The notes beneath the pieces were generated by a model that was not told the origin of the DNA, made no database searches, and worked only from the letters and a program-made list of their open reading frames with translations. Shown piece after piece: positions 24,231 to 43,039 of a stretch of DNA of 64,000 bases. Location: IMG/VR virus record IMGVR_UViG_3300045125_000071, positions 62,001-126,000 of that record; one strand, given 5' to 3'. The stretch's first letter is position 1. Every line of letters starts with the position of its first letter. The position numbers and the translations under genes were made by a program.

Positions 24231-25436
24231 TTATCTTTTCCTACCAAATAACCAAGAATATTCTTTATACATCTCTTTAGTGTTATTCATTGGGTTATTA
24301 GCATGAAATAAACTATCATTTGTTTGTAATGCACCTAATGGGTCCATTGTTTGTCCATATGAATAAAATGATTTATTGACTTCATATGTTCTTTCAGATA
24401 ACATCCAGGAATCAATAACCGCCTTATTAACAGAATCTGTTCTTTCCAATTGATTAAAACACAAATCACCAGCATATAATGCAACGGATAAACTCATAAT
24501 AGAGTCATCATGCGCACCTTTCATGTGGTCTGGTCTACCATTTATATAGACAAATGTATTTAATTCGTTCAATAATCTACTTGACCTGATTTGAAATCCT
24601 TTTCTTAATTGTTCCTCAAATGCTGCAATAATTTGTGTTCTTTTATTATTGAAGTTGATACCAGGAATTTTTTCTAAAGTCTTTTTGTTGTATTCCCAAA
24701 TATTTTGAGTATTGATACCGTCGATGAATAAATTTTTATAATTCATTTCTTGCAACTTTCTAGATGTTGCAATACCCATACCACCTGTAATATCTATAAC
24801 AATAAAAGCATTACCATATAAAATACCCCATTTATATGCAATAGCGGCTAAATCATCTGGCGGTATTTTTCCAATATATTCAACAACTTGTTCTCTTTCA
24901 TCAAAATCAATTATATTAATAGAGGAAAAGTCTTCACTATCCCCTCTTGATACGTCGATTCCAGCAATATATCTATGACCTTGAATTGGTTCTTTCCATT
25001 GCCAAAATGTACCTTGCATATATTTTTCTTTCGGAACTCTAATCATGTTCTTGGCAATGTTTTCCTGTACATCATTTGGTATAACACCATCACCCGAACC
25101 TAAAAAGTCACAGTTATGTGATACAATATTATTTGTAAAATATAAATGCATTTCACCTGCGTCTACAATATCATAAACATCGCTTTCATATTCGTAATCA
25201 ATTATTTTTTCAATTGTAAAATACCCATCGTGTGATTTAATTAAATCTTCTTTTTTTACATTTTTTATTAATATCTCATTACCATCGAAATCAAATATTT
25301 TGTGATTATAACTTGCTCTTAATGTTAATCCATTAGTAAAAAATATTTCTCTTGTTTTCTTTTTCAATTTTTGTATACCCAAAAAGTCAACAAACCCTTC
25401 GGGTGATAATATTTCATATTTTGTATTAAGTTTCAT
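24231..25436 (-). CDS. terL: Terminase large subunit C-terminal (nuclease) half with N-terminal IntC split-intein fragment (25113-25436, 108 aa)
   Basis: IntC ends ...YFTNNIVSHN then CDFLGSG; downstream YIAGIDVSRG, HDDSIMS nuclease motifs. Confidence 0.9.
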   Translation of the reverse strand: MKLNTKYEILSPEGFVDFLGIQKLKKKTREIFFTNGLTLRASYNHKIFDFDGNEILIKNVKKEDLIKSHDGYFTIEKIIDYEYESDVYDIVDAGEMHLYFTNNIVSHNCDFLGSGDGVIPNDVQENIAKNMIRVPKEKYMQGTFWQWKEPIQGHRYIAGIDVSRGDSEDFSSINIIDFDEREQVVEYIGKIPPDDLAAIAYKWGILYGNAFIVIDITGGMGIATSRKLQEMNYKNLFIDGINTQNIWEYNKKTLEKIPGINFNNKRTQIIAAFEEQLRKGFQIRSSRLLNELNTFVYINGRPDHMKGAHDDSIMSLSVALYAGDLCFNQLERTDSVNKAVIDSWMLSERTYEVNKSFYSYGQTMDPLGALQTNDSLFHANNPMNNTKEMYKEYSWLFGRKR

Positions 25437-25463
25437 CTATTAAAAATTTTATACATTTTTCAA

Positions 25464-26588
25464 TTAAATTATTTGGTTTCTTTTTTTGTTGTATTCATCC
25501 GAATCAATTACAAGTAATTTGTAACCATGATTTGTATAAAATTGGTTTCTTTCATCGTCCTTATCTTTGTTATGCCAATATTTTCCATCATATTCAATAA
25601 TTTTATTTTTATATACAAAATCAGGAAAATATAATTTACCATCATTATGTAAAAAAATTTCTTTATTTAATTCATGAAAATAACAATTGTTCTTATCTGA
25701 TAATCTATTATATATTTCCCAAAATAATTCTTGTGAAATTTTAGAAACTCTTTTAGTTTTTAATTTTAAAATTCTTTCAACTTGACTATCAATATATTTT
25801 TTTCTTTTTTCTTCAAAATCATCACCATATTTTTTTATAAACCAATTAACACTATTCACTTTAAATTCAGTAATTTTGTCTCTATTAATTTTATAGTGAA
25901 CTTCCCATTCTTCACCATATTTTTCTTTGAACCATTCTTTTTGTGGATATTTTATTATTTTTTCATTAAAACATTTTTTACAATATTTGTTAAAATAGTT
26001 TTTTTCATAACTAAATAAACAATAATTTTTATTACATATCGGACATTTTAATTTATTAAAATCACCATTATAATCTCTTATAAATAAAACTCTTGATGGA
26101 AATTTTTTTGTGGGTGTATTTAAAATATCTAATGATGATGAATAATGGTATATTGATTTATATAATTTAGGATTTTTCGACATTATTTTTCTGTTTGTTG
26201 ATTTACCAAATATTTCATTATCAGAAAGACTTTTTTAAAATTTCTATCGTTTCTTCTAAAGAAAATATATCAACAGACTCTATTATTTGATTTTTTCTTC
26301 CCATCCAGTTTTAGCGGAATTTTTTGATTTTTTTACGAAATCATCTTTTTTTCTGTCAAAAGTTAACCATCTATCATCATATCTTAAAAGATTCAAATTA
26401 TTTTTATATTTTAAAAGAAAAATAACTCTACTTCTTAATGTTTTATTTACACAATATGTTTTTTCAATTTGACTTGTTAATTTATATATTTCTGTAAATA
26501 ATTCAGGGTATTTCATGTGGAATGACATACCAATTTTTTTATTTTCTAAATATCCAGTATCAATTATATCTTTAATTATTTTTTCCAT
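25464..26588 (-). mobile_element. Vsr/DUF559-like homing endonuclease between the two terminase halves (fragments 26283-26615 and 25464-26183)
   Basis: CPICNK...YCKKC zinc knuckle; YFPDFVYKNKIIEYDGKYWH catalytic motif. Confidence 0.75.
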
Positions 26589-26627
26589 ATTAATAAATAT
26601 TGAAGAATCACACAAAAGATAGTACCA

Positions 26628-27613
26628 CTACAAACTATTGTATAATTCTTCTATAGTCATATTTATAATTTCATTAGTTTCTTTATTTCTTACGGTAACA
26701 GTAGTCGAACCATCAACACATTCCAATTCTTGGGCAATTTTTCTTCTATCGTATTTAAATTTTTTAGACATTGATTCAAACCACGAAGAAAATGGTTTAT
26801 ATCCTTGCTCTTCGTATTCTCGATATTTTTCAATGTCAAAATCCCACAACGTAACTTCATCATCATTGTATAGTTCTCTATTTAACATATAATGTACAAT
26901 GTCATTACATTTTACCCATTTTAAATCTTTTGTATAACGAGGGTCTTTAAACCAACGTAAATCTGTTATATGAAAATCATTTATTCTTCTTATTGCTTGG
27001 TCATATACACCATAATAAATTGGGTCGTAGCCATTAGGTGTTGAAATAAGAATAATCTTACCACCAGTTGAAAGAGATGCCATAGATGCGGCCCAAAAGT
27101 CCTCACCAGCCTCAATATATGCAGCCTCATCAAATACTAGAATGGTTGGTGTATAACCACGAAGTGCGTCAGGAGAAGTTGCTACCGCCTTTACTTCACA
27201 ACCATTGTTTAATCTAAATCTACTTTCAGAGTTCTTATCTGGTGAAAAACCCACATTAATCCATTCTGGCCATTGGTCTAAAAAGTTTCTTATCTTGTTC
27301 GCCATTTCAATGGCGGTATCTCTTTATTCGCAATAATCAGAACTCTCTCAGGATTCTCAGGTTTTGCCACTTGCAATAGTTTTGATACCCATGCTGCGGT
27401 TACAGTTGTAACACCCGCTTGTCTATATTTTCTTGTTATATTTTCATTATATCTTTCATAATCATTAATGAGTTGTATCTGGTCAGGAAATAATTCTAAT
27501 GGTACATATCTTTTTTGCGTATTATCATATGTTTGCAAATATGTTCTTAATGCGTATGGAGTGTCTCTGATAATCTTCGCATATTCTTTTAATTGTTCTA
27601 ATTTTTGATTCAT
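26628..27613 (-). CDS. terL: Terminase large subunit N-terminal (ATPase) half ending in IntN split-intein fragment (26631-26720, 30 aa); one indel near 27325
   Basis: KYRQAG.TT Walker A, ILVFDEAAY Walker B, ISTPNG; ends QELE-CVDGSTTVTVRNKETNEIINMTIEELYNSL-stop. Confidence 0.9.
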
Positions 27614-27674: not shown

Positions 27675-28935
27675 CTATTTAGATAAACCAATACCTAATC
27701 CTGCAAGCATGTTATTTATATCATCATCTGATGTTTTATCAGATAATTCTTTGATTAGTTTTTTAAATTCTGATTCTTCCTCAGTAACAGCGTCCTGACT
27801 CCTTAACCTTGACATATCATAGTGAAGCGCAGCCATTAACTTTTTTGATTCTTTACTGTCCGAGAATATTTCTTTATATAAAATCAAATATTCTTTAGTT
27901 GGTAAATTTGCTACGTTAGAAACCAAATAAAAAATAAATTTTCTTTTATCATCTTCAGTTCTTAATGATAATGGTAATTTAGAATAGAATTTTCTCCATA
28001 TTGCTGGACCTAATCTTATATCCCAAGTTTCAGCCTTTAAAGTATCTTCCAATCTTTTAGCTTCAACGTATGTTGGTTTATGCTGAGGTTTTCTTTTATC
28101 CCCAAGATATGACATTACACCTTTAATCCCTTCATGTATTAAAAATGGAAACACAACAGCTTCAGCCCAAACTTTTGGCGGTTTTTCCTTGTTGTGAATC
28201 CGCTCTTACCACCAGCACTCGCTTCATTTATAGATATTTTAGATTCTTCTAAACCCATTTGTGATTCTGACATTTGCCAATATCCAAATAACATAACTGA
28301 AGTAAAAAAACCATATTTTTCAATTATTTTATCATCACCAGTCAATTTTATTAATTCATCTTTAGAATTTTCATAAATCCAATGCCCATCAACAGATAAT
28401 CCATGTGTCATGGCATTCTGTATTCTCCTTTGCATTCTCTCCTCATCTAGATTAACTAAATCTTCAGCCAATTTTTCTTCCTTTTTTTGTAATTCCATTT
28501 CACTTGGCTCATCATCAATTTTAATTGACTCCCTATTCAATTTTAATTCTAAAACCAACGCTTGTTTTGGTATTCCAAAATAATCTCTTAATATCTTTTC
28601 TGCTAATTCTTCTAATTCATCTTTTTTATTGCTTTCTAAAGCTATTATTTCTTGCATAATTTGAAATGCTTTAGAAGATAATTCAAAAAACTTACCAGAA
28701 GTACCAGTACCAATATCACCAACACCAGTATATTGAATTAATTTTGAAAGTGCATTTTGATATTCATCTGATGCTAAAAATTCTTCATAATTTGAATAAT
28801 CAGTGTCTTTATGCTTTGGAAAATCTATTTTACCATAATCGGTATCCCTGGCTTGTAATTTTTTTCAACCTCAGGATTAGGACGACTTCCATGATAAAAT
28901 TTCATCGCTTCATTTTGCTCTCCGTGTTTTGGCAT
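27675..28935 (-). CDS. Conserved hypothetical protein, fragmented
   Basis: Consecutive fragments 28139-28657 and 27675-28154. Confidence 0.5.
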
Positions 28936-42885: not shown

Positions 42886-42962
42886 AGTCAGGTGGTGTAA
42901 TTGGTAGCACAACATCCGACAAGGGATGGAGGAGTCTAAAGGTTCGATTCCTGTCCTGACTA
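42886..42962 (+). ncRNA. tRNA-scaffold RNA 8 (77 nt)
   Basis: CATCC-GACAAG-GGATG 6-nt loop lacking U33. Confidence 0.8.
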
Positions 42963-43039
42963 CGATTAGAGGTATAGGGGTACCCTGAGGCGAAGTACAA
43001 GCCATGGTCACTGAATGTAAACCAACTCTAAACTAATTT

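Follow-up and report, generated by a model that had tools for sequence, protein, structure and literature searches.

The 64,000-nucleotide (nt) stretch of viral DNA analyzed here, referred to at its full length as the window, carries a gene for the large terminase subunit (TerL) that is interrupted at one exact point of its coding sequence. With the support of sequence, profile, fold and comparative evidence, we consider it likely (probability of about 0.85) that this is a fractured terL gene with a mobile cassette, which comprises the N-terminal part of a split intein (IntN), a free-standing endonuclease of the EDxHD (Vsr-like) type, and the C-terminal part of the intein (IntC), and that the two TerL portions are joined by protein trans-splicing. 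The analysis confirmed that the TerL intein is indeed atypically split and accompanied by an EDxHD homing endonuclease, i.e., a known arrangement and not a new kind. An earlier note on this DNA, made from the sequence alone, had given the coordinates, peptides, and TAG stop codon of the fractured gene correctly; all of them lie on the minus strand.

The window is part of IMGVR_UViG_3300045125_000071 (contig Ga0494335_367 from the JGI metagenome 3300045125; 251,358 bp). For comparison, IMG/VR was searched with the 401-amino-acid (aa) product consisting of IntC and the C-terminal portion of TerL (TerL-C). In total, 527 relatives were identified, and the best 80 of these 527 were compared in detail. 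Single relatives are labeled L001, L002, and so on up to L088, with L082 being IMGVR_UViG_3300046006_002827.

The split intein within TerL

An uninterrupted TerL, reading DRRKIAQELE|CDFLGSGDGV across the site, was found in at least 66 of the best 80 relatives, and 73 of the 80 match only residues 109–401 of the query. Homology to these intein-less alleles breaks exactly at E|C. As TerL of the relatives is contiguous there, the 30 residues of IntN, the 108 residues of IntC, and everything between them represent an insertion at this exact point. Without the cassette, TerL would comprise 591 aa, and the insertion lies between its codons E298 and C299. This point would be located roughly where the ATPase domain gives way to the nuclease domain, with the catalytic Asp motif of the nuclease following ~50 residues downstream; both placements are interpolated between flanking alignments to T4 gp17 structures and do not refer to an aligned position.

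The N-extein starts with the ATG at 27613. Its first part (27323–27613) includes the Walker A region (RQAGVTT) and is 80–92% identical to residues 1–97 of TerL in the relatives, while the second part (26721–27322) contains Walker B (LVFDEAAY) as well as the ISTPNG motif and ends with ...RKIAQELE. The second part shows 91–94% aa identity to L001 and L008–L010, and matches Pfam Terminase_6N, the PHROG terminase large subunit, and the T4 gp17 ATPase domain in the PDB. IntN follows directly (26631–26720; 30 aa, CVDG...YNSL). It begins with Cys1, comprises intein block A only, is absent from the intein-less alleles, and is terminated by the TAG at 26628–26630. On the far side of the endonuclease gene, IntC (25113–25436; 108 aa) has its own ATG at 25436 and carries SYNH (block B), VYDIVDAGE (block F), and IVSHN (block G). 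It forms one 401-aa open reading frame (ORF) together with the C-extein, i.e., the nuclease domain of TerL (24231–25112; coding 25112–24234, stop 24233–24231), which starts with Cys+1 (CDFLGSG). Homology of TerL-C begins exactly at residue 109, with 79–88% aa identity to intein-less relatives and with matches to the PHROG terminase and to the gp17/RB49 nuclease domain in the PDB.

The best PDB match of IntC was 6DSL_B, the C-terminal part (CatC) of a consensus engineered intein (E = 5.7e-10 by phmmer, 36% identity), followed by weaker matches to DnaB, gp41-1, and DnaE inteins. A model of IntC, built with AlphaFold2 (AF2) on 49 homologues, reached a mean predicted local distance difference test (pLDDT) value of 95.3. 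When this model was compared to the PDB using Foldseek, the top 50 hits were all inteins, including VidaL at rank 5, and the best template modeling (TM) score of 0.84 was again obtained for 6DSL_B ("Cat, with atypical split site"; 36% identity, 108 columns). The 30-aa IntN alone had no match in the PDB. In class-1 inteins, the catalytic residues are Cys or Ser at position 1, the block-B His, the terminal Asn, and Cys, Ser, or Thr at position +1. Cys1 is present in all seven IntN sequences compared (window IntN is 90% identical to that of L082 and 43–50% identical to those of L001–L006). Across 49 IntC sequences, H45, D89, and N108 are invariant and H107 occurs in at least 90%; among 141 profile relatives, the HN terminus is found in 134 and a subsequent Cys+1 in 114. 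Furthermore, IntC is under purifying selection, with a ratio of nonsynonymous to synonymous substitution rates (dN/dS) of 0.08 in comparison with L082.

The assignment to the atypically split inteins of the AceL-TerL/GOS-TerL type, which had been proposed in the earlier note, is borne out by the agreement of the CatC match, the intein fold, the 30/108 split, and the catalytic residues. The AceL-TerL/GOS-TerL group has Cat as its consensus, with an IntN of 30 aa (IntC 104 aa), compared to 25 aa for AceL-TerL and 37 aa for GOS-TerL (PMC11766414). The window intein shares with these three a phage large terminase as host, a split on the N-terminal side of block B that leaves IntN short and IntC long, and the presence of Cys1, the terminal His-Asn, and Cys+1. 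Its IntC begins at the same point as CatC (KLNTK...ILTPSGF), yet it is only 36% identical to it, and its host differs from those of the group by its T4-like jumbo phage background, where the nearest isolates are ~30% identical in TerL-C. The ...QE|C(D/E)FLGS site of the window TerL is common to many matches of an IntC profile (described below). Short candidate peptides for AceL-TerL occurred in none of 150 representatives and were left aside.

Based on these features, a route to intact TerL can be proposed. Two polypeptides would be made, TerL-N-IntN and IntC-TerL-C, the latter probably by translational coupling to the endonuclease gene, whose 3' end overlaps the ATG of IntC. The short IntN would then dock into the nearly complete IntC and complete the HINT fold, and class-1 trans-splicing via Cys1, the block-B His, the terminal Asn, and Cys+1 would ligate ...QELE to CDFLGSG..., resulting in normal TerL. 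Alternatively, the intein halves might act as a mere dimerization module that holds the TerL halves together non-covalently and without splicing. Such an assembly is documented for a fractured phage gene encoding ribonucleotide reductase (PMC3045599), and the split near the ATPase/nuclease boundary is a place where separate chains might still work. We nevertheless regard it as very unlikely, as all residues needed for splicing, including the block-F Asp, are invariant or nearly so in the 49–141 homologues, IntC is held at the low dN/dS given above, and characterized members of the class do splice.

The TAG that terminates IntN is in frame with the subsequent ORF (26615–26286), as stated in the earlier note, which had therefore cautioned that readthrough or a sequencing error should be considered. 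This caution is addressed by the relatives. The cassette is 88% identical at the nt level in L082/L086 and L088, which originate from two other metagenomes, and the same TAG is found there within an identical 55-nt stretch. In L001–L007, IntN is terminated by TAA instead, at the codon of the TAG or one codon later, and in these as well as in L082 it comprises 30–31 aa with the stop immediately after. A cis-splicing intein with a nested endonuclease, for which the TAG would be an error or read through, could draw on the frame that the TAG shares with the next endonuclease ORF in the window and in L082/L088. It has, in our view, next to no chance of being correct. Neither the window nor any of the relatives compared has a single continuous ORF through IntN, endonuclease, and IntC, which is due to stops and frame changes. 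The frame of the endonuclease differs from that of IntN in L001, and endonuclease and IntC are in different, overlapping frames in L082; the relatives thus do not conserve the option of an uninterrupted cis-intein ORF. In addition, L002 lacks the endonuclease altogether, with the stop of its IntN and the start of its IntC overlapping in the sequence TAATG (L002 4437–4446), and the window frame holds further stops between TAG and IntC.

Recoding or suppression of the TAG was rejected as well, since TAG is an ordinary stop in the window, where it terminates 11 of the 50 long ORFs, and no suppressor tRNA was seen among the window's five tRNAs. Likewise, the one frame shared by all four ORFs was not accepted as meaningful, but as a coincidence of the sub-lineage that is not kept in L001. 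Judged by these comparisons, the intein is split, a read-through cis intein is untenable, and the in-frame TAG is peculiar to this sub-lineage.

The endonuclease gene and frame breaks in the assembly

The gene between the intein halves falls into several pieces as sequenced. The N-terminal piece (26291–26588) starts with the ATG at 26588 and corresponds to a 110-aa ORF (26615–26286; 101 aa from the ATG; stop 26285–26283). It is followed by a linker in a shifted frame (26231–26290), the C-terminal piece (25488–26230), which is covered by a 239-aa ORF (26183–25467) from an internal ATG at 26183, and a tail in a third frame (25426–25487), which ends with LIEKCIKFLIDET and has its stop at 25428–25426. 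The 110-aa and 239-aa ORFs of the window correspond to one ORF (~360–387 residues) in L001, L082, and L088, and the N-terminal piece is 88% identical to L082 and 49% identical to L001. The C-terminal piece comprises a Cys-rich CxxC...CxxC region and an EDxHD/Vsr-like nuclease core, with the core residues E in FHELN, D in FPDF, E in IIEYDG, H in YWH, and D in KDKDDE. A profile of the C-terminal halves (A2) had 3R3P, the catalytic domain of I-Bth0305I, as its sole significant match in the PDB (E = 4e-5). The invariant residues E171, D188, H204, and D209 align with the active-site residues E170, D196, H213, and D222 of I-Bth0305I, and the L001 endonuclease reached 32 bits on Pfam DUF559 (cut-off 20.6). 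Neither of the two window pieces nor the intact L082 endonuclease had a PHROG match, and the 110-aa ORF had no meaningful match in Pfam.

These similarities point to a free-standing EDxHD (Vsr-like) homing endonuclease, as first described in fractured genes. The earlier description of a Vsr-like endonuclease thus remains valid for the family and for the free-standing position between the intein halves; the gene is larger than had been assumed, as it includes both ORFs, and it is broken as sequenced. In a co-infected cell, the enzyme would be expected to cut intein-less terL near ELE/CDF, with the consequence that the whole cassette is copied in (homing).

The endonuclease 3' end overlaps the ATG of IntC by 11 nt in L082, and overlaps are also present in L001 and L003. 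The homologous tail in the window likewise overlaps the IntC start by 11 nt, but in another frame because of the indel at ~25487; as sequenced, the 239-aa ORF ends 27 nt upstream of IntC. At the other end of the gene, a predicted RNA hairpin (26586–26650) covers the end of the IntN coding sequence together with its TAG and extends over the 5' leader of the endonuclease gene; a TATTTAT-N-ATG start motif comes after it. The hairpin has a folding energy of −16.8 kcal/mol (z = −3.6), which was not reached by any of 200 shuffles; it is kept in L082 (z = −2.35) and not in L001. No Rfam match, neither to a group I intron nor to another RNA element, was obtained at E ≤ 0.1.

Within 3.4 kb, TerL-N and the endonuclease gene show four frame breaks, all in or adjoining A-runs, which had escaped the earlier note. 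In TerL-N, an apparent 1-nt deletion (27322–27323; AATAAA-GAG compared to AA(T/C)AAAAGAG or AAACGTG in relatives) leaves the window one base short in relation to 69 of 71 aligned relatives. Homologous reading of the first ORF stops at ~27323 and continues out of frame to a stop at 27292–27290, and the second ORF begins, as sequenced, at an internal ATG at 27305, so that TerL-N is called as two genes, of 107 aa and 225 aa. The endonuclease gene differs from L082/L088 by −1 nt at ~26290, +1 nt at ~26231, and −1 nt at ~25487, all in or beside A-runs. As a result of these three breaks, no intact frame joins the presumed DNA-binding part and the nuclease part, which are continuous in L001, L082, and L088. 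Comparison beyond terL was limited to the 14 kb covered by relatives and revealed further 1-nt indels in or beside A-runs, which break the T4-type portal gene (~22603) and genes at ~18986, ~20664, and ~30643/30549. The C-terminus of the portal protein carries on in another frame after ~22600. We also noted a tRNA at 42886–42963 (plus strand) whose variable arm is long and whose anticodon loop has six bases. ARAGORN reported it as "tRNA-???(ca)"; probably, it represents a tRNA of the Leu type that lacks one base, in line with the indel problem.

Because single-base homopolymer indels are scattered through essential, well-conserved genes, we favor assembly errors as their source. The frameshifts in TerL-N and the endonuclease are thus, with good probability, homopolymer errors and not biology, and the contig is probably an error-prone assembly, possibly from long reads. 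Programmed −1 frameshifting at 27323 was rejected, as the site lacks a slippery heptamer and other genes show comparable breaks at scattered positions. The hairpin located after 27323 was also rejected as a frameshift signal; it is part of the conserved coding sequence for TAIEMA and present in relatives that need no shift.

If the breaks were taken at face value, the locus would be decaying: the frameshifts would be real, the endonuclease dead, TerL-N divided into the 107-aa and 225-aa pieces, and the intein a relic in a defective or minority variant. Besides the four breaks as sequenced, this would fit the expected loss of the endonuclease after fixation, which is seen in L003–L007, where a 65-codon remnant is left, and in L002. 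We consider decay unlikely, as the same 1-nt A-run indels affect the portal gene and other conserved genes within the 14 kb, along with the distorted tRNA. Moreover, the endonuclease is under purifying selection in comparison with L082 (dN/dS of 0.11 for the N-terminal and 0.33 for the C-terminal piece) and has kept all catalytic residues, and the −1/+1 pair, 59 nt apart, restores its frame. Broken genes in this contig should not be taken as biology without reads, given the frequency of homopolymer indels.

Several observations weigh against a functional fractured terL with a mobile cassette. If the frameshifts were real, this TerL and this endonuclease would be defective, and no second assembly of this strain was found: a pattern scan of viral contigs retrieved only the source contig and the L082/L088 lineage, an exact-protein look-up only the source contig, and two exact-pattern scans of metagenome contigs had no match at all, the source contig itself included. 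The 239-aa piece of the window alone stays below significance (E = 0.14 for 3R3P; 19.1 bits for DUF559, compared to the cut-off of 20.6), and the Vsr-like assignment of the window endonuclease is carried by the family profile and the relatives. Finally, neither a Shine-Dalgarno sequence nor a sigma-70 signal was recognizable upstream of IntC.

Probable mobility and distribution of the cassette

Between the window and L082, nt identity amounts to 78% in the last 321 nt of the N-extein, 96% in IntN, 91% in the endonuclease gene, 89% in IntC, and 75–76% in the C-extein. Synonymous divergence (dS) between the two is 0.06–0.6 within the cassette, compared to 1.3–1.5 in the exteins. The TerL alleles closest to that of the window, L008–L010 (82–88% nt identity), are without cassette, and L001, with an N-extein that is 91% identical to the window at the aa level, has an intein of only 47–57% aa identity. 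Furthermore, the GC content of the cassette is 18–23% (window 25200–26700), compared to 30–40% in the exteins. Taken together, these contrasts in identity, dS, distribution, and GC content reveal different histories of cassette and host gene: the cassette is younger than the gene in which it resides and has a separate history, as expected for homing.

A search with the IntC profile against 1.84 billion cluster representatives (50%-identity clusters) resulted in 177 matches at E ≤ 1e-10 and 1010 matches at E ≤ 1e-3, the representative nearest to the window IntC being 63% identical. Due to this abundance, the window intein can be regarded as one member of a large, already recognized family. The claim of a new natural split-intein pair therefore applies to a new sequence variant, but not to the family, which is large and already described. 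The best 150 matches were inspected. In 98 of them, IntC is located at the very N-terminus, with 95 of the 98 beginning with Met; the length of these proteins, mostly 350–420 aa, corresponds to IntC plus a nuclease domain of terminase. In the remaining 52, a contiguous mini-intein is located within a full-length terminase, at the same ...QE|C.F.GS site. Such cis mini-inteins share the TerL site with the window (...QE|C...HN|C(E/D/S)F(L/I)GS), but consist of a single polypeptide without endonuclease, and the window intein is interrupted exactly at their short variable loop.

Whether the cassette of IntN, endonuclease, and IntC is at present transferred as a whole among diverged terL alleles, in a lineage that keeps every stage of the fractured-gene life cycle, is a proposal to which we would give even odds. 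The stages would be the following. The empty site (at least 66 contigs) and, in more distant terminases, cis mini-inteins at the same site appear to be among them. The split intein with an intact endonuclease is found in L001, L082, and L088, and probably in the window. The lineage also appears to hold the 65-codon C-terminal remnant in L003–L007 (5817–6011), which still overlaps the ATG of IntC, and the absence of the endonuclease together with the TAATG overlap in L002. L003–L007 and L002 look like stages of endonuclease loss in which the split intein has been kept. If true, the gene-breaking model of the origin and persistence of split inteins could be tested on the natural sequences of this lineage.

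Additional inteins were observed in the relatives. In L082 (1501–6430), three inteins interrupt TerL. The ATPase domain holds a cis intein (ILIS|TPNG) and the nuclease domain another one (GHRYLMG|..DVS), in addition to the split intein, for which the site reads EIE|CDF. A cis intein of ~440 aa at ILIS|TPNG, with an endonuclease-sized insert and the end ...GHQ|TPNG, is also present in L002 (2676–3979) and L006/L007 (4056–5362). The internal profile matches (P0006–P0052) include the contiguous mini-intein relatives in many other terminases. As a separate observation, a few of the profile matches occur in non-terminase-like contexts and have Ser or Thr at position +1.

Relation to known systems and neighboring features

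Among the closest known counterparts of the locus are the fractured genes of Dassa 2009, for which a terminase host, a Vsr-like endonuclease, 6–69 bp overlaps of endonuclease and IntC, and leader hairpins have been reported (PMC2677866). The window shares with them the presence of IntN, free-standing endonuclease, and IntC ORFs in one locus and on one strand, as well as the terminase host, the Vsr-like endonuclease, and the leader hairpin. However, in most loci described there, the intein is divided at the canonical position and has a long IntN. Three frame breaks must be allowed for before the window shows an overlap of endonuclease and IntC and an endonuclease gene in one ORF, and its leader hairpin is not conserved in L001. 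Regarding the endonuclease, I-Bth0305I (3R3P, PMC3239194), the EDxHD prototype, resembles the window protein in its C-terminal Vsr-like core with aligned E, D, H, and D, and in its two-part architecture with an N-terminal, presumably DNA-binding region. In contrast to the free-standing protein between intein halves, I-Bth0305I is located in a group I intron of recA and has NUMOD/helix-turn-helix motifs. The window family is furthermore longer (~350–390 aa compared to 266 aa), possesses the Cys-rich CxxC...CxxC segment, and has an N-terminal part without Pfam or PHROG match.

Few natural atypically split inteins have been characterized, namely AceL-TerL, GOS-TerL, VidaL, and PolB16 OarG, and the family is already in use for protein engineering. 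To this family, the window adds a Cys1/Cys+1 pair with a 30-aa IntN and 36% identity to the Cat consensus, and the IntC-first terminase halves in metagenomes, which amount to roughly a hundred clusters at 50% identity, represent a ready pool for engineering. With regard to phage biology, the locus would clearly illustrate the need to reassemble an essential packaging ATPase/nuclease after translation, with a seemingly laterally mobile cassette.

The host of the locus is regarded as an uncultured T4-like jumbo phage to which all isolate phages are distant. The 251,358-bp source contig encodes a T4-type portal and a prohead protease, and related contigs reach up to 333 kb. The region had no Megablast match among 50,697 phage records, and TerL-C is only ~25–31% identical in the nearest isolate phages (tblastn).

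With respect to expression signals, the "own upstream motif" that the earlier note ascribed to the endonuclease can at most be TATTTAT-N(1–6)-ATG, and this motif is not specific to the gene, as it is common to TerL-N and four other ORF starts. It occurs ten times in the window and opens ORFs of ≥ 60 codons in six cases, compared to 12% for any ATG. The ORF starts concerned are 27613, 26588, and 57515 on the minus strand and 5921, 11311, and 54077 on the plus strand; the IntC start is not among them. Located close to starts, the motif may serve as an expression signal in this phage. Sigma-70-like promoters were not enriched in the window (30 found, 31.3 expected). Two adjacent ORFs (28657–28139 and 28154–27675) correspond to one ORF of ~450–510 aa in the relatives; with the stretch at 28139–28220 counted among the indel sites, this likewise suggests an error-prone assembly. 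Upstream of TerL, an 11-bp terminator-like hairpin followed by a T-run (27654–27629, minus strand) was found ~15 nt from the start codon.

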